A stretch of DNA of 64,000 bases from Epithemia pelagica (Eukaryota; Protista; Bacillariophyta), in the NCBI GenBank assembly GCA_946965045.2, contig OX337241.1:1054001-1118000 (forward strand). Direction: 5' to 3'. The position numbers were made by a program, and so were the translations under genes. The notes beneath the pieces are model-generated. The model saw nothing but the letters and a program-made list of their open reading frames with translations. It made no database searches and had not been told where the DNA came from. Positions within the stretch are counted from its first letter, which is position 1. Every line of letters starts with the position of its first letter. Below are positions 36,842-45,449 of this stretch, one piece after another.

Positions 36842-38265
36842 ATGGTCCTGACAATCCTTTCGGCGACATGGACCAGCGCTCGAAGTGCTGTGGCATTGTC
36901 ACACGTTACAACAATCTTGGAATCTGGAATGTGCGTGTCGTTGTTCCTGCTGTGGCTGCCCTGGGCGCACCAGATCGCCTGGTTCTACTACCGCATGGTA
37001 GTGGATTCCTATCTCTTTTCCTTTCGAACCGTGTCCGAGGTTGCGGATCGAGCCTGTCAGGAAGAAACAAGCAATCAGCCCGTCATTCGATTCCCCTATG
37101 GACAACGAACCATTGTGTTTTCAAACAAGGACGACGTCGCCTACATTCTTTCCAATCCCAAGGTGAACAAAAACTACCGAACCCGATTTGCCACAAACTT
37201 TGGACTCAACATGTTGGGAATGTACAAATCTGGCTTGATCTGGAACAATGATTTGGGATCATGGCAAAGCGTCCGCCGGTGCTTTGATCATACCTTGAGT
37301 ACCAGCACTCTCAACAGGCTCCAGAGCTTTGTCCAAGATCAATTTCCAAAGATACTCGAGAAAATGCCTCGCGACGAGAATGGAGGGACCATTGACATGT
37401 TGGATGCGCTTCGATGGATGACCCTCAACATCACTCTCGATATGATGCTCGGCTTGCCTGTTGTGGATGAGTGGAACAAGGCTCAAGGAATTCTTGAAGC
37501 TATCGTTGCCTTTTTCAAAGCCTGGGAGTTCTTTTTGGTTCGTCCATATATTGTGTCCGTGCTCCGACCCGGCTACCAAAAGCATGCCATGGCAAGGTAG
37601 GTTCCTTATAGACCACGATCATGAGGTCAGCAGACAAACTGACTCACAACTATTTGTTGATTGACCTGTCGTCGGGTTTTCATTCTTGTACAGTCGCCGA
37701 TTGCATGAGATTAGTGAAGGCTTGTTGTCGGATTACGATAGACAACGCGAGCAACATCCCGAGAAAAAGTCGCCCTTGTTGGACAAGGCCATGGAAAATA
37801 CAGAACTTGCTCGAAGCGATCTCGTGCAATTGGTACTGGAATCCTTGTTGGCTGGAGTGGACACTTCCTCGGTATCGCTGTTTTACACGTTGAGTTTTTT
37901 GTCGCAAACCGAGAATCGAGATATGCTTCGACAGGCGGTGGAGGAGGTTGACACCTTTGTACACCATGGCGACAAGATTAAAGCCATGTCCTTGCCGTTC
38001 ATCCGAGCATGTATCAAGGAAGCCATGAGACTCAAACCTGTCGGACCCATTATAATGCGCAAGGCAGCCCAACAGGACAACGTAGGCACCACTATCATCC
38101 AGCCCGGCGATTCGATTATTCTGAACCTGGCCCAAATGAATCTCAAGGGTGTGGAAACCTCCTACTCGCCAAGTCGGTTCTTGAATGAGGAGGGCCAGCA
38201 TACACCCGACGCCCAGTTACCCTTTGGATACTTTCCATTTGGCGATGGTCCCAAAGGATGTGTCG
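36842..38265 (+). pseudogene. Cytochrome P450 resembling the CYP19 (aromatase) clan, truncated just after the heme Cys; intron 37597-37693
   Basis: I-helix LESLLAGVDTSSVSLF, ExxR (EAMR), and heme motif FGDGPKGC (Cys codon 38259-38261) followed by unrelated sequence. The GT..AG intron restores the frame. Confidence 0.85.
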
Positions 38266-38272
38266 TAGTTCT

Positions 38273-38477
38273 ACATCTGCTCCGCGGAGTGATCCGAGGA
38301 GTGGGGCACGACGAGGGGCGCCTAACTCCGAGAAGGGCAATAGGTCCGAGGAGTGTACTGCCCAACAAATCCGCTGTAAGCGGATTTGGGGCAGTACACG
38401 ACGAGGACCTATTGCCCGCCGAGGAGTTAGGCCCCCGAGAAGTGCCCCCGACGAGAATCACGACAAGGAGCAGATGT
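38273..38477 (+). other. ~205-nt hairpin with periodic tandem G.A mismatches
   Basis: Nested arms CATCTGCTCC/GGAGCAGATG, GTGAT/ATCAC, GGGGCAC/GTGCCCC, CCTAACTC/GAGTTAGG, GGGCAATAGGTC/GACCTATTGCCC, GTGTACTGCCC/GGGCAGTACAC and CAAATCCGCT/AGCGGATTTG around a GTA loop. Confidence 0.95.
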
Positions 38478-38551
38478 CGTGCGCTTCCGTTGCGTCCGAG
38501 GGGGGATGTATGTGTCACACAGAATTAAAATTTGTTAGGCTTTTCCTCCGT

Positions 38552-38681
38552 TGATTTTTCAAAGTCGTTGCTCTACTTAGTCTATGTAGTCACTTATTGG
38601 GGGAAATTACTTACAATGATTTTTCAAAGTCGTTGCTCTACTTAGTCTATGTAGTCACTTATTGGGGGAAATTACTTACAA
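38552..38681. repeat. Two perfect tandem copies of a 65-bp unit
   Basis: TGATTTTTCAAAGTC...ATTACTTACAA at 38552-38616 and 38617-38681. Confidence 0.95.
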
Positions 38682-38864
38682 CACTTAGGATCTCACTATT
38701 TAGGAACAGAAGATCACATAGCGTCTCACTATTTAGGGGCAAACGAAATACTTAGGTGCTACATAGGGCTGTCTTTGAAAATGTGAGAGGCATCGTTGTA
38801 GGCGTTGTTGTTGTCGTTGTCGTCGTCGTCATTTCCTCATCCATTTGATTCTTGAGTTGCCACC

Positions 38865-41719
38865 ATGACGAATCGTCCCGTGGTCAGCCCCATGCCCCGC
38901 TCCGCATCCCATCGCGGCACTGCCGCTTCTCCGATCTCGCTTGCGTCGTCCTCGTCCTCGTTGTCGTTGTCGTTGCCTTCCGATTCGTCGTCGGATGGCA
39001 TCTCCTTGATCTTCGAAGCGTATGACCCAACGGTCGACGAATGGGATGGCACCTTCGTACCAAGGATCGACGAATGCACAGGAGAGACCGATCTCCATAG
39101 CCTGCATTCCGATCCTTGGTACCTTGAGCGGCGCGACAGAATGTAAGTTGATTGTTGTTTCGTCCTTTTCGTCGTCGCCATGGTCAAAAGTCTTCCTTTC
39201 TTCCTTTTCTTCCTTTTTCTTCCTGCGCGCCTGCCCTTCCAATGCTCATTCAAATCGTCCTCGCCCTCTCTCTCTCCTCTCACTTTTCTTCCCTTTGCCA
39301 TTTCGACGACAGGAAGTTCTTGACCATGGCGACGACTCCTCCCGCCACCCGCCGCTCGAAGCGGCAAGCTGCAGCCGCAAGCAAACCGCCGAATGAAACT
39401 TCATCCTCCCCCGCCCGCAAAGTAGCCCGCCGAACAACCACCAACAAGAAGAAACAGAACCAGAACAGGAAGAAGGCTCCTCCTTGTCCTCCTCCTTCGC
39501 AATTGAACAAGGAGAACGATCCTCCTCGTTCTCTTCGCTCCTCTGCACGACAAGAAAGGTACGTTTGTTGCATTCGCTGCTACCTGTTGATTGTTGTTTC
39601 CACTCTCACTGTCTCTTCTCTCGACAGTACCAACCCTCCAAACGACGACGACGACGACGACGATCTTCCTCCCCGCCTTATTCAACCACGACGACAACCC
39701 AACAGGCAAGTGTTTGTTTCTTCCTTCTTGTTGATTGTTGACTCTTCCTTCTCTCACACCCCGCCTCTCTACAGAAACAATCAAACGAATCCGTTCGACG
39801 ATGATTCGGATGACGAAGATACGGTGTTTGATGAAATGGTGGAAGATCTCGACGCGGACGAAGATTTTGTCCCTTCCGTTTCTGTTCGAAGCCGCCGAAA
39901 TGCCCGTGCACGTGGTGTTCTTGCTCGGCGTGCCCCTCCTCCTCCTCCGTCTCCACTAGATACGAAGACGGTTGCTCGCGCAATGGTGGAACGACGACAC
40001 CTCGAAGAAAACGAGCAAGGCGAGATCGCGATTGCGGAGTATCGAACACTCCCTCTCGACGAAGCTCACGATGAGAACTGGCTCGAGTGGTACGGCGCGT
40101 TCGCAGAAGTGAGTGACGAGGTGTTTGCAGACGAGGTGGGTGATTTCGACGTTCGACTGCTTGCCGGCGTTTCGGAGTCCTACAACAAGGCAAAACAAGA
40201 CTCCGTTCAACGATTCCTAGATATCATTCGCCGCCATCGGCATTACCGCGGACTCGCGAAGCCGATTGTTGACCCCGAGCGTGATGACGGACTGAAAGTC
40301 CCCAAGTTGTTTGTCGCTTTACGCGGGGCCAAGACGGACAGAAAGTTGGGGCTACTCAACTCGTTGCTAGCCATCTTCTGTATGAACCTACGAATGGAAG
40401 GGTATGTGAAGGGGCGTGATCATCCACACGACCCCAAATTTCACTACCAGCCCAACACGACGGCGAAGATCTTGAACCACCTGTTCTCGACCTTCCACGC
40501 GAACGGCATTTGCATCGGACAAACGGACCTCAAGGGCAGAGGTTCGTACCATGCCTACTTAGAAAAGATATGGTCGAAGACGGCGAAAACACGCCCCGAA
40601 TTTGGACGGCTGCCAAAACGTGCAACTGCGATTATGGACGACGAGTACCATATTCGCAAGCTTGCTGATCCTGCTCTTATACCATTCGAGATCTTTCGCG
40701 ATTTGCTCATACTACTCTTTTACTACCTGAGCCGCGATATTAGCTTTCGATGTTTAGAGGTACGTACCGAAACGGTTGATTGTTGGGTTTTCAGACTTGT
40801 TTTCTCACCTCTGCTGATGTTTTTTCTACTTCTATTCAGATACATTTAGCAAAGATGACCGACTTTCGTTTCGTAGCTAGACTAGACAAGTCGTATGGAG
40901 AACACGCGGGAAAGCCAGCGATCATTCCTCTTGATTCTGGTCACCACAAGAACGTCAAGTTGACGTTGGCGAAGCCGACATTTCACCGAACCCACGATTA
41001 TCGTTGCAACATGATTATAGAGAACGAAAAAGACCCATGGAGTACCTACAAGTTGTTTATGCACTACATTAAAGTAGCGCACCCGCCGGGTTGGAAAGGA
41101 TTGGTTTTCTTGTACCAGGCGCCGAAGAAAGTGATCGCGGCCCGAAAATCTGGATCGAAACATCTCGGCTGGACGGATTTGGTGAAGGACCGTGCCCAAG
41201 AGAAGTTTGACCCGGTCACGGGCATGCGTCCTGGCGGCAAACTCGGATCCAACTTTGCCAATTCAAACACAAAAGAATTGGCCGCTCGTTGTAAGTTCCC
41301 CGAGGATGGAAACTTTGCGGGCCGAACGGCCCGTCGAACTGGTATCTCGAAAGTTGCGAATAGCGGCGTGCCACAAGCTTTGGCAGACAATTTTGGCCGC
41401 CACAAAAATTCAATCACCAACTACAAGTACCAAGAAATGTCGAACAAGTCAAATCTGACTGCGTCGACTGCGTGCTGGTACATTCCGTCGGACGACAAAG
41501 ACGAGCAGCCGAAGGAGAAATCACGTAAGTTTGTTGTTTGATTGTTGTTTTGTTGGTAACCAGTCTCTCACTCTTCTTCTCTTTTTTTTAGCTCCAAATC
41601 AATCGTCTGACGCTGCTGGTGCTGGTACCAAGACAACTGGATTGAGTGGTGGCGACAGCTCTCCGTCGTTTTCTCCGTTGGGATTTGATTGGGGCGACGG
41701 TGGCGGTCCTGTGGAGAAT

Positions 41720-41757
<38 letters not shown>

Positions 41758-42535
41758 GAATGACCGACCACCCTACGAGAACAACAACAACGGCAACCAC
41801 GGACGACCACCCTACGAGAACAACAACAACAACAACAACAACGGCCGACCTGCCTACGAGCGCCAAAACAACAACAACAACAATAGCAACGGCCGACCTC
41901 CCTACGAGTGGCAAAACCACAACAATAACAACAACAACCACGGACGACCACCCTACGAGAACAACAACAACAACAACAACAACGGCCGACCTCCCTACGA
42001 CAATAGCCAGTAGCACCACAACAACAATAACAACAACAACCGACCGTCATACTACGACGAACCCTCCCATCACCACAACAACAACAACCATGGATCGTGG
42101 GAGAGTGGCCACCAATGCTACCCCAACCAACACAACAACAACAGCCGTCCGTCGCACTACGACGAACGCTCCTGGCAGCGGTCTCCCCCTCCACCTTCGT
42201 CCTCTCATTACAATGGAAATGGGGCCATGGTCAATTGGAGTCCACGTCCTCCCCCCCCCCCACGCAACAACTACTATCCTCCGCGTGGACGATCTCCTCC
42301 ACCGCCACCTCCTCGCCCGTACACGCCTCCGCCACCACCTCCTCCCTCTTCTCGTCTCATTGGTGAGGCGGTGTACCGCCGCAGAGTGGAGCACTTTCAC
42401 CAATCACCGCCTCCTCCCACGTACAGTTCGTCCTACCATCACCACCGCTCCGAGGCATACTATCCTCGCGGTGATAATCGCCACCATGGTGGCGATTACT
42501 ACAACCAACACCACCATGGTGGACGATACTACTGA
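38865..42535 (+). CDS. Tyrosine recombinase with a long N/H/Y/P-rich tail; predicted exons 38865-39142, 39313-39558, 39628-39705, 39775-40759, 40840-41524, 41592-42535 (in-frame TAG at 42011-42013)
   Basis: After splicing: YLSRDISFRCLE-IHLAKMTDF (catalytic Arg I), AGRTARRTG (Arg II box) and FGRHKNSITNYKY (His, with Tyr at +9). All junctions keep the frame. Intron 39706-39774 has a GCAAGT donor. The first exon could be UTR (alternative ATG at 39326). Confidence 0.75.
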
Positions 42536-45449
42536 ACTAGGTAAGTTTTCTGTGTTTGATTGTTGTCTCGTCTTTTCTTTGTTCTCACTGCTTCCTTTTC
42601 ATTGCAGATTGTTACTTGAGCTCTTCGTGTAGATTGCTTCAATATGTAAGTGTTTTCTTCGCTCTTTTTGATTGTTGCAACCATTCCCATTATCAATGCA
42701 TCTCTAACCATTGTCTTGATTCTCTTTTCTCTCGGTCTGCTCTTTGATTCATTCTGTTTTGTTGTTGGTTATGCTTCTGTGTTTCTGTATTTGGTTGATT
42801 GTTGTTTGTTTCATTTTCGTCGTCTCTGTTTCTATTGTTGGTTCTTGCCTTTCTTGGCTTATTGCGCTGGTTTTTGCCTTTGGTTGATTGCTGCTTTGCT
42901 ATTTGTCTTGGTTGATTGTTGCATCGCTTTTGGATTCTTTGTTTGATGCTTTGCTTGTCTCTCTTGATGCTTCTGCTGTCGCTTTACCTTTGTTTTTCGC
43001 TCTGCTGTTCTGTCATGCTGCTTCTTGATGTTTGTTTCTTCTATTGCCTTGGCCGCCCTTTTTGGTTGATTGATGTTTGCTTTTCCTCGCTGTTGTGCTT
43101 ATTGCCTCGCTTGTTTGATTGTCATGTTTCTTGTTGCCTCTGTTCCTTGGTTCTTTCACTACGGTTTCTCTTGTTGTTTCGGTTGCGTTTCGATCCATTT
43201 TGTGACCCTGGTTTTACGCTCGGAATTTCCCACGACCGCTAAAATACATACGTACACTAAAATTAAAAACCGAGTACAGTACAAAATGGGCTATAGTAAA
43301 TAGGCACGTGCAGGGATCCTACATCCCTCCCGAGGACCAATGGTAGTCAACTACTATGAGCGCCAGAGAACTTGTGACAGGCGAAACGCTTGATTTTAAT
43401 CGGCACTGCCGGTTTGAGTTCGGCGAGTACGTACAATGCCATGAGGAGCATGATAATACCATGGCTCCTCGCACGGTGGGGGCACTTGCATTACGCCCAA
43501 CAGGCAATAGGCAAGGAAGTTATTACTTCCTGAGCCTCGAGAGTGGTCGTGTCATTACTCGGAACCATGCCACCAAATTACCAATGCCGAAAGAAGTGAT
43601 CCAGCGGGTGGCACAATTGGCAGCTTCCCAAGAGATGCAACCTGGTCTTGCTTTCGGAAACCGAGATAACCGAATTCTCATGTTAGATGAGGATAATCCC
43701 CTCCTGGAGGACAATGACAGTGTGTATACGCATGTGGAGGAGGAAGACGATGATCTCCGCTATGATGACGATGTGGTTGATCATGAACTGGAAGACGAGC
43801 CAGATCCGAACGGTCCACCGATGGAATGGGACCAAGATGGTGTTGAAAACCAGGAAAACCAAAAAGTGAATGACCCAGCTGGTGGTTTTGACAACGGTGA
43901 CGGTGAGATGGAACCTGTGGAACAGGGAATCATGGAGGAGCCAATGGAGGTAGAGGCAGGGAATGTGGAGGAATTGATGGAGGGGGAAATGGAACAAGAC
44001 AATAATGACAATAATGACATTGTTGTGGCCGAAGAAGACGTCCAAAACAACAACTATGAAGAAGCGATTGATATGCCGGACAACGAGGAGATGGAGATTG
44101 TCTTCGAGCCTGCAAACGACGATGGAGACACAGAAAATGACAACGAGAACCCGAATGAGGGTGACAATGACAATCAACGATACAACCTGCGCTCGAATCG
44201 TGAGCGCAGTTACGCTCATCGATTTGGTCACACATTCGCATGTGTTGACAGCCTCGAACCGAAATAGCGTTACGATGGATACCTGCTCCGCGGAGTGCTA
44301 TATCTCATTGAGGCAGAGACAAACCTAGCAACCCCACAGATGTCTATGAGGCTAGGGATCAAGATGTTTGGCAACAAAGGAAGAGAAGCCGTTAAAAAGG
44401 AAATAAAACAGCTGCATGACCGAGGGGTTTTACAAGCCGTCCACAAAGCCGACTTATCGTGGGAACAAATTAAGCAAGCACTGAATTACCTGATGTTTTT
44501 AAAACGCAAGAGATGTGGAAAAGTAAAAGGTCGGGGCTGTGCTGACGGGCGTAAACAACGAGGTTTTATCCCGAAGGAAGATGCCGCTTCACCCACCGTT
44601 TCAACAGAAGCAGTTTTCATAACGGCAGTCGTGGGCGCTGGGGAGAGGCTATGTTGTCATAGCAGATATCCCAGGCGCGTTTATGCATTCCGACATGGAT
44701 CCAAATGTCCATATGCGCATCGAGGGATTAATGGCAGAATTGCTCTTGGAAGTCGACTATGAAATGTACAGCAAATATGTGGTATACGAATACAACAAAC
44801 CGGTTATCTATGTGGAAATGTTAAAAGCTTTGTACGGCACCCTCAGGGCTGCTCGTCTCTTCTGGATCAAGCTGAGTGGGGTCCTGCAGAGTTGGGGGTA
44901 CATCATCAACCCCTACGATCACTGCGTAGCAAACAAGATCATTAACGGAAAGCAATGCACCGTAACCTGGCACATTGATGACTTGAAAATCTCACATGAG
45001 GACCCTGCGGTTGTTGAGTCGTTCTTAACCGATCTACAGGCTGAGTTCGGATCTTTGGGAGACATCTCGGTTTCCCGCGGAAAGCGCCATGATTATCTGG
45101 GGATGTTTCTAGATTTCTCCGAGGACGGGATTCTTCAAGTTGACATGCGCCCATACTTACAAACAATTTTTGCTAACATGCCATCCGAGATGGTTGGCAA
45201 AGCCCAAACGCCAGCTGCAAATCACCTGTATCATGTGAACAATGAAGCAACAAAACTCAATGAGCAGCATGCGGAGCGTTTTCACAGTATCACGATGCAG
45301 TTAGCCTACCTAGCACACCGCGGTCGGCCCGATATTCGAACTGCTGTCGCCTTCCTGTCCACCCAAGTGGCACAACCTGATGAAGACGATTATCGGAAGT
45401 TGTCACGAGTGTTGAAATATTTGCAAACCACCGTGGATTTGGTTCTTCG

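Follow-up and report, generated by a model that had tools for sequence, protein, structure and literature searches.

The window analysed here is a stretch of 64,000 nucleotides (nt) of Epithemia pelagica (assembly GCA_946965045.2, contig OX337241.1, positions 1,054,001 to 1,118,000), which is full of nested transposable elements. One of them is a Crypton-like mobile element on the plus strand with a tyrosine-recombinase gene (see the table below for its parts). Its left end carries a rod-shaped hairpin, and the fold of this hairpin, its conservation in other copies of the element and its possible role are the main subjects of this report. Between the hairpin and the gene lies a left subterminal inverted repeat (IR-L), whose partner (IR-R) is found at the right end of the element.

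Fold and mismatch pattern of the terminal hairpin

On folding, positions 38273-38477 form a single rod of seven Watson-Crick stems separated by 5x5 internal loops and closed by the apex CCGC-TGTAA-GCGG. With DNA parameters the 205 nt fold at -73.1 kcal/mol on the plus strand and at -70.0 kcal/mol on the minus strand, compared with means of about -29 to -30 kcal/mol for shuffled sequences (z-scores of -13.7 and -14.5, respectively), and none of 200 shuffles matched the fold energy of the hairpin. RNA parameters, in which tandem-GA loops are represented by measured values, give -146.4 kcal/mol (plus) and -135.5 kcal/mol (minus) with a z-score of -20, the plus strand being better by 11 kcal/mol. 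An initial annotation of the locus, made from the sequence without database searches, had described this segment as one hairpin with mostly G·A mismatches that form seven 5'-GA/3'-AG tandems; the folding of both strands and the shuffles agree with the former statement, and the arm alignment described next returned the same tandem count.

Since alternative local pairing at the base of the hairpin made the loop parsing of the minimum free energy structure unusable for the window copy, the two arms were instead aligned against each other. This alignment contains 78 Watson-Crick pairs, 4 gap columns and 21 mismatched juxtapositions, and 17 of the 21 mismatches are G·A or A·G (composition-adjusted binomial tail for at least 17 of 21, 3e-8). 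They are arranged as seven tandem 5'-GA/3'-AG steps, purine-rich on the plus strand, and the other mismatches are C·A (twice), A·A and A·C. At the corresponding positions the complementary strand would carry T·C/C·T mismatches. In published melting data, the stacking of tandem GA-AG steps in DNA is unusually strong and C·T mismatches are very weak (PMC8163305). No G·T pair occurs among the 78 Watson-Crick pairs of the window-type hairpin or among the 73 of the related L003-type hairpin discussed below.

The internal loops follow a common pattern. Where GAGGA stands opposite GACGA, for example, the juxtapositions are G·A, A·G, G-C, G·A and A·G, with the middle position paired G-C. Both arms carry the 7-nt word C-GA-N-GA-G in the same 5'-to-3' sense, and partner words differ only at their centre, where one has G and the other C, so that this position can pair. 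In the form CGASRAG the word occurs nine times in 173 nt, always on the plus strand, against about 0.09 occurrences expected from the window background (Poisson probability 7e-16). An Rfam scan of positions 38000-43600 at E-values up to 1 matched no family.

Conservation of the hairpin in other copies of the element

Further copies were found through homologues of the catalytic open reading frame (ORF) at 40780-41541, and their genomic loci were retrieved and compared. Three loci (L007, L008 and L135), in which the upstream DNA is too short for the hairpin to be judged, were left out of the counts. An equivalent hairpin is present on the coding strand of the recombinase in 10 of 10 further loci of the same assembly with enough upstream DNA, one of which (L131) is truncated, and its distance upstream of the catalytic exon is 2.0-2.6 kb in these ten loci and the window. 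It stands 0-7 nt from the left terminus, and in the lineage of L006 within a few bases of the first nucleotide of the element. Its length is 205 nt in window-type copies (L001, L004, L132 and L133), 197 nt in L002 and L003 (the L003 type), 235 nt in L005 and 136 nt in L006 and L134. Additionally, two metagenome contigs (L009 and L010) represent one distantly related intronless element with a recombinase of 935 residues, where a hairpin of 163 nt is located about 100 nt upstream of the start codon. The hairpin is found down to a recombinase identity of 45%.

The initial annotation had considered that its proposal might fail if other copies lacked the hairpin, if the mismatches in them were random, or if the hairpin belonged to an unrelated repeat family. 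None of these was observed. All ten assembly loci and the intronless metagenome element carry the hairpin, and G·A accounts for 19 of 20 mismatches in the L003 type (nine tandems), 21 of 35 in the L005 type, 15 of 23 in the L006 type and 8 of 22 in L010. The enrichment in G·A reaches p-values of 3e-8 to 1e-11, and the purine·purine mismatches sit on the plus, or coding, strand in every lineage. Neither the window nor the loci retrieved through recombinase homologues contained a hairpin apart from the element. A metagenome scan with the recombinase alignment found nothing, and one with the 15-mer CGAGAAGGGCAATAG returned chance matches only, none of them hairpin-like beyond 21-25 nt.

In alignments A1 and A3, which cover three lineages, the loop motif CGA[G/C][G/A]AG is invariant whereas the stems vary. 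The consensus structure of these lineages obtained with RNAalifold has 73 pairs, nine of which have changed on both sides with pairing kept, for instance from C-G to G-C (outer stem; GCCTAAC/GTTAGGC) and from T-A to G-C (GTGTAC/GTACAC). The hairpins of L006/L134 and L010 have stem sequences unrelated to those of the window type, yet they keep the loop motif and follow the same plan, in which GC-rich stems of 4-12 bp alternate with GACGAG-type loops. Because the stems covary and the loop motif is invariant, the hairpin is considered a selected structure rather than a decayed palindrome, in line with the initial annotation; the decayed palindrome was rejected on the compensatory changes, the invariant loops and the G·A enrichment. 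Judged from these alignments, selection maintains both the complementarity of the two arms and, at each loop, a word that is specific to one strand.

Sequence identity between the window-type and L003-type copies is about 80.6% over the hairpin and the following 30 nt (IR-L) and 79.5-80.5% over the right end (43226-43348), compared with about 65.5% over the recombinase coding DNA. The apices of L003 (C-GTCA-G) and L005 (C-GTAA-G) are G...A loops, and several apical loops are GNRA/GNNA-like. The apex of L010 (positions 160-200; the same in L009) reads GGGC-GAA-GCCC and contains GCGAAGC, a heptamer known from phage origins as a DNA mini-hairpin of exceptional stability.

Two individual copies show peculiarities of their own. 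At L134:5690-5870 a further 15-bp inverted repeat (GAACTCCCTATGTCT... / ...GGCATAGGGAGTTC), lying partly in the left flank, encloses the hairpin, and the sister copy L006 is without it. At L131:3460-3700, a window-type copy is truncated at its 5' end, with unrelated sequence standing in place of the left terminus and the left hairpin arm.

Pairing between the two ends of the element

A search for duplex partners of the 60 nt that follow the hairpin, extended over several kb downstream, gave the right terminus as the best partner in five of the seven window-type and L003-type copies; in L132 and L133 an internal site nearly ties with it (-21.4 kcal/mol versus -21.0 and -21.5 kcal/mol for the right end). 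In the window the pairing brings together 29 nt of each end (43318-43346 with 38484-38512) and includes one CGAG/CGAG tandem G·A and one T·G wobble. It is retained in the L003 type through changes that preserve pairing, and the L006/L134 type has a different repeat of 39 bp, which covaries between its two copies and contains one tandem G·A in a pyrimidine-GA-purine (Py-GA-Pu) context. Altogether, pairing of IR-L with the right terminus is seen in four lineages, with exactly one Py-GA-Pu tandem G·A in each, although the sequences of the repeats differ. Some of the other mismatches in the repeats are G·T, which is favourable on the plus strand, and the rest are mostly T·T, T·C and C·T, with one C·A and one A·A.

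When the right-hand 60 nt were joined to the left end as a single-stranded junction, the modelled fold was one continuous rod in five of five copies, in which the end-pairing stem is followed by a small internal loop that contains the terminus and then by the G·A hairpin. The end pairing and the junction folds together give the architecture terminus, hairpin, IR-L, gene, IR-R, terminus. According to these models, all cis sequences of the plus strand can fold into a single structure.

Identity of the recombinase and relationship to Cryptons

The catalytic ORF contains the motif RxxRR-TG followed by RH-x8-Y, both nearly invariant in 66 relatives, and 143 relatives of the recombinase are present in the representative library. 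The first catalytic arginine was not located in the spliced gene of the window copy itself. A profile of the family searched against Protein Data Bank (PDB) sequences matched tyrosine recombinases only, although weakly, the best match being XerA at an E-value of 0.011. An AlphaFold model of the recombinase reached a predicted local distance difference test score of 86.6, and its top Foldseek matches are Tn1549 Int, Cre/Tre, XerH, XerA, Flp and IntI (2a3v, the IntI-attC complex), with probabilities up to 0.99 and E-values of 0.01 or weaker. QRICH1, which carries the Crypton-derived DUF3504 domain, is also among the matches. Pfam returned no match for the long ORFs of the element or for full-length homologues, and detected neither an integrase domain nor DUF3504, and so the assignment is drawn from the PDB profile search and the fold search, by which the protein is classified as a tyrosine recombinase. 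No reverse transcriptase or RNase H was detected by Pfam in the ORFs of the element, and the RVT_2 matches fall in neighbouring Copia fragments, outside 38266-43346. By its enzyme and by the absence of a reverse transcriptase, the element is a Crypton-like DNA element.

Cryptons are currently pictured as double-stranded circles that recombine through repeats of 4-6 bp, with unstructured ends. To our knowledge, no experiment has shown how Cryptons or other eukaryotic tyrosine-recombinase DNA transposons move. Crypton DNA transposons, which include the CryptonS of oomycetes and the diatom Phaeodactylum (Kojima & Jurka 2011, PMC3212892), have a single large tyrosine-recombinase gene and no reverse transcriptase, as does the present element. 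The size of the element, about 5 kb, and its host, apparently a stramenopile alga, are further likenesses; very short repeated bases (TAG/GTAG) stand at the ends of the window-type copies but not of the L003 type. Cryptons have been described as having direct repeats of 4-6 bp and neither terminal inverted repeats nor long repeats (PMC3212892, PMC13465315), whereas the family studied here has a terminal hairpin of 136-235 nt and an inverted repeat of 29-39 bp, the left copy of which lies just interior to the hairpin; the description of Cryptons as free of terminal inverted repeats does not hold for it. It also differs in that Pfam finds neither of the two domains named above. Hairpins or palindromes are not mentioned in these two Crypton papers (PMC3212892 and PMC13465315), and full-text searching of the literature on Cryptons and recombinase transposons found no report of a G·A-zipped hairpin.

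Possible role of the hairpin

In the reading that agrees best with the observations, the hairpin would be a cis-acting module of the element end that acts as a folded, single-stranded DNA site formed by the plus strand, comparable to integron attC and CTX-phage attP(+). We place the probability of this reading at about 0.45, a little short of even. According to it, the word C-GA-N-GA-G of one arm would meet the copy in the other arm to give C-G, G·A, A·G, N-N', G·A, A·G and G-C, and such motif-on-motif pairing would yield a rod zipped by sheared tandem G·A pairs. If the strand were to become single at a fork or after one-strand excision, both ends could join into one long rod, with the junction, and hence the crossover point, placed in the internal loop that separates the G·A hairpin from the end-pairing stem. 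The recombinase would then recognise and cut the folded site, and the G·A pattern would set the choice of strand. The pairing of the right end with the left subterminal sequence lends weight to a recombination site. The single-stranded form, the binding of the recombinase and the position of the cut are inferred. More tentative, and to be held with somewhat less confidence, is the wider proposal that the family moves via single-stranded DNA, its ends folding into an attC-like rod made strand-specific by periodic sheared tandem G·A. The conserved hairpin suggests that these eukaryotic elements may be recombined as folded single strands, like some bacterial elements.

Several points weigh against a folded single-strand recombination site. 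All the elements examined but one come from a single genome assembly. Under the DNA nearest-neighbour model the two strands differ by only 3 kcal/mol, so that how large the asymmetry is depends on published values for tandem G·A. Neither circle (end-to-start) junctions nor splice joints were seen in the Logan contigs of public runs, which are direction-less and of unspecified kind, and no recombinase-binding boxes flanking the cut, such as are recognisable in attC and CTX attP, were identified. Moreover, we know of no eukaryotic tyrosine-recombinase transposon that uses single-stranded DNA, nor of any reconstitution of Crypton transposition.

Being strictly oriented and more conserved than any other feature, the motif would also suit a double-stranded accessory site, where 8-12 copies of CGASRAG in the same orientation bind the DNA-binding part of the recombinase or a host protein on duplex DNA, much like the arm sites of lambda att or Tn3 res, the palindrome serving for cruciform extrusion or deriving from an inverted duplication. 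The recurrence of the CGAG core in IR-L and IR-R adds to this, as does the fact that canonical tyrosine recombinases act on duplex DNA and that the closest folds to the model are such enzymes. However, an array of duplex sites needs neither covarying stems nor arms that stay complementary in lineages with unrelated stems, and the centres of partner motifs differ (G versus C) so as to pair mutually. A cruciform, in turn, requires both strands to be folded, yet the minus strand would carry T·C/C·T at every loop (PMC8163305), and we regard such a site as unlikely. Quite unlikely, in our estimate, is a rod of RNA, be it a structured leader, a read-through or junction-spanning RNA signal, or a hairpin that feeds or evades small-RNA silencing. 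Such a role would fit the strong and strand-biased RNA fold, the stability of CGAG-context tandem G·A in RNA as well, the GNRA/GNNA-like apical loops and the observation that the strand with the purine loops is the sense strand of the recombinase in every copy. With the hairpin 0-7 nt from the element end, however, a promoter borne by the element cannot include it in the sense transcript of an integrated copy, and a leader folding at -146 kcal/mol would stop scanning ribosomes. G·U, which is usual in selected RNA helices, is absent from the 78- and 73-pair stems, and the missing Rfam match and reverse transcriptase also speak against RNA.

Strand specificity, a size of about 140-235 nt and the terminal position are equally well accommodated by a signal for single-strand replication of an element that leaves as a single-stranded circle or linear copy, either an orientation-specific priming site for the complementary strand, like the single-strand origins of rolling-circle plasmids, or a cap that protects the end. 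The GCGAAGC apex of the L010 type would suit such a signal as well. This role would leave unexplained the pairing of the right terminus beside the hairpin, with the junction inside the rod; in addition, Pfam and the long ORFs point to no replication protein encoded by the element. We hold this role to be very unlikely. Foldback repeats are common in genomes rich in transposable elements, and in a window with so many nested insertions the hairpin might be thought a functionless passenger, a foldback-like palindrome or miniature inverted-repeat transposable element (MITE) inserted by chance at the element end, its G·A pattern being a mutational by-product. It is extremely improbable that such a passenger would be retained across all lineages, to recombinase identities as low as 45%, and in the metagenome relative without introns, be more conserved than the coding DNA, and show both the enrichment in G·A (p of 3e-8 to 1e-11) and the compensatory changes described above. 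A foldback or MITE origin was rejected as a candidate on the local structure also, as the sequences flanking the hairpin (TAGTTCT and CGTGCGC) are not duplications, the hairpin travels with the 5-kb element, and no solo copy was seen in the window or the homologue loci.

Comparison with known systems

A folded single-strand recombination site would have its nearest counterparts in attC and CTX attP(+), used by IntI and XerCD. In these, as in the present family, an imperfect palindrome associated with a tyrosine recombinase folds preferentially on one strand, strand information is carried by non-canonical features of the stem, the structure is conserved with variable stem sequence, and the recombination point falls within the structure (here, in the folded junction model). 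The bacterial sites are about 60-150 nt long, and their strand choice is determined by extrahelical bases (attC) or by an unpaired central region (CTX), whereas the putative site described here is a periodic rod with 7-9 tandem G·A steps that belongs to a eukaryotic transposon.

Among eukaryotic recombinase elements, DIRS elements have termini that are complementary to an internal region, an arrangement proposed to join the ends of a single-stranded intermediate. In DIRS the single strand is a cDNA, and RNase H and a reverse transcriptase are encoded, whereas no reverse transcriptase was found here; we know of no G·A rod described for DIRS. The terminal hairpins of parvoviruses and the fold-backs of Streptomyces telomeres are of similar dimensions (about 100-250 nt), and in them purine·purine mismatches or bubbles matter for strand-specific processing. 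These are, however, the ends of linear replicons, served by HUH or terminal proteins and subject to flip/flop inversion, whereas the present element is integrated with host DNA on both sides and has one orientation in all copies. A parvovirus-like or telomeric end with flip/flop was rejected on these two grounds.

The integrative SE elements of Vibrio provide a precedent for the circularisation of one strand only, since one particular strand is copied into a circle by their tyrosine recombinases, and their ends carry imperfect inverted repeats (PMC9345347). They differ in being bacterial and in having several recombinase genes, and their att sites showed no attC-like structure; hairpins have no mention in the paper (PMC9345347).

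If the hairpin does act as a folded single strand, it would be the first such recombination site known from anything other than bacteria or their phages, and none before it would have relied on G·A zippers instead of extrahelical bases for strand choice. It would extend the principle of attC and CTX to eukaryotes and tie transposition to replication or to other sources of single-stranded DNA, and would give a compact example from nature of a long rod of nucleic acid whose stability comes from tandem G·A steps that look designed. The cis element of this family is defined, conserved and strand-specific, measures 136-235 nt and has a partner repeat at the opposite end, which makes the mechanism directly testable. 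Even if the structural part alone holds, the hairpin would be a sharp diagnostic for annotating, in algal genomes, a family of elements that is invisible to Pfam.

Boundaries, insertion sites and other features of the element

Coordinates and evidence for the parts of the element within the window
Feature	Position	Strand	Basis
Crypton-like mobile element, 5.08 kb, with tyrosine-recombinase gene	38266..43346	+	BLAST against other copies, flanks, empty sites
Left terminus TAGTTCT	38266..38272	+	Junction alignment of 5 copies
Rod hairpin, 205 nt	38273..38477	+	Folding and arm alignment; conserved across lineages
IR-L, left subterminal inverted repeat, predicted to pair with right terminus	38484..38512	+	Duplex-partner search
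Upstream recombinase exons	ORFs between ~38865 and 40849	+	
ORF, catalytic C-terminal part of tyrosine recombinase	40780..41541	+	Homologue alignment, profile, fold
IR-R, right-end inverted repeat and right terminus, ending ...CAATGGTAG	43318..43346	+	Junction alignment, duplex pairing

In BLAST comparisons with other copies, homology begins at 38260-38262 and stops at 43346-43348, and the flanks differ in every copy. On the left side, read contigs continue a cytochrome P450 gene past 38265, the point at which the empty P450 allele diverges from the window. The continuation completes the haem-binding loop (C-V-G-K-H-F-A-M-W-E-M-Q), which identifies it as an uninterrupted allele or paralogue. 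With the left end of the element at 38266, the hairpin begins 7 nt inside it; the distance of 8 nt from the P450 breakpoint given by the initial annotation is borne out, the last P450 base being 38265. On the right side, the boundary is set by contigs from an intact Copia element, which meet the window sequence at 43346.

The target G at 38265 and the left terminus together read GTAG and form, with the first bases of the hairpin, a small palindrome (GTAG-TT-CTAC), which covaries in the L003 type (GTAA-TA-TTAC). Window-type copies begin and end with TAG, or with GTAG on both sides when the target G is counted, whereas the ends of the L003 type (TAA... and ...TCG) are not repeats of each other. 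Neither the empty P450 site (GTCG^GGAA) nor the empty Copia site (GTTG^TCAA) contains TAG; the TAGs at the termini therefore do not represent a target duplication, and a 4-bp duplication was rejected. The four bases preceding the element are GTnG in seven of seven copies (GTCG in the window, GTCG in L001, GTAG in L004, GTTG in L132, GTAG in L133, GTGG in L002 and GTTG in L003), and GTTG also closes the Copia empty site. Either a preference for a short target or a crossover sequence common with the ...ATGG end of the element may account for this.

The two flanks of the element in the window do not match. To the left lies a P450 gene cut right after the Cys-Val of its haem-binding loop (38256-38265), and to the right the middle of a Copia element (43346-43360); contigs of the intact Copia element read ...ATGAGTTG^TCAACT, and the rest of the P450 gene is absent from the window. 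The arrangement suggests recombination between two copies of the element, a deletion, or an assembly join across the repeat.

Two tandem units of 65 nt (38553-38682), lying between the hairpin and IR-L on one side and the first ATG of the recombinase (38865) on the other, may be a duplication of the promoter region. Downstream of the catalytic exon, an AAC-rich tandem array in the coding frame (41700-42180, with periods of 39-48 nt) encodes poly-Asn blocks with a repeated GRPPYE motif. Contig depth in run X3 is 10,000-41,000 over the 3' part of the element (41179-42861) and about 1,000 over the rest of it, compared with about 500 in the other two runs. The excess, which covers part of the recombinase exon and the N-rich repeat, could reflect either a transcript or another, amplified copy, the kind of run being unspecified.

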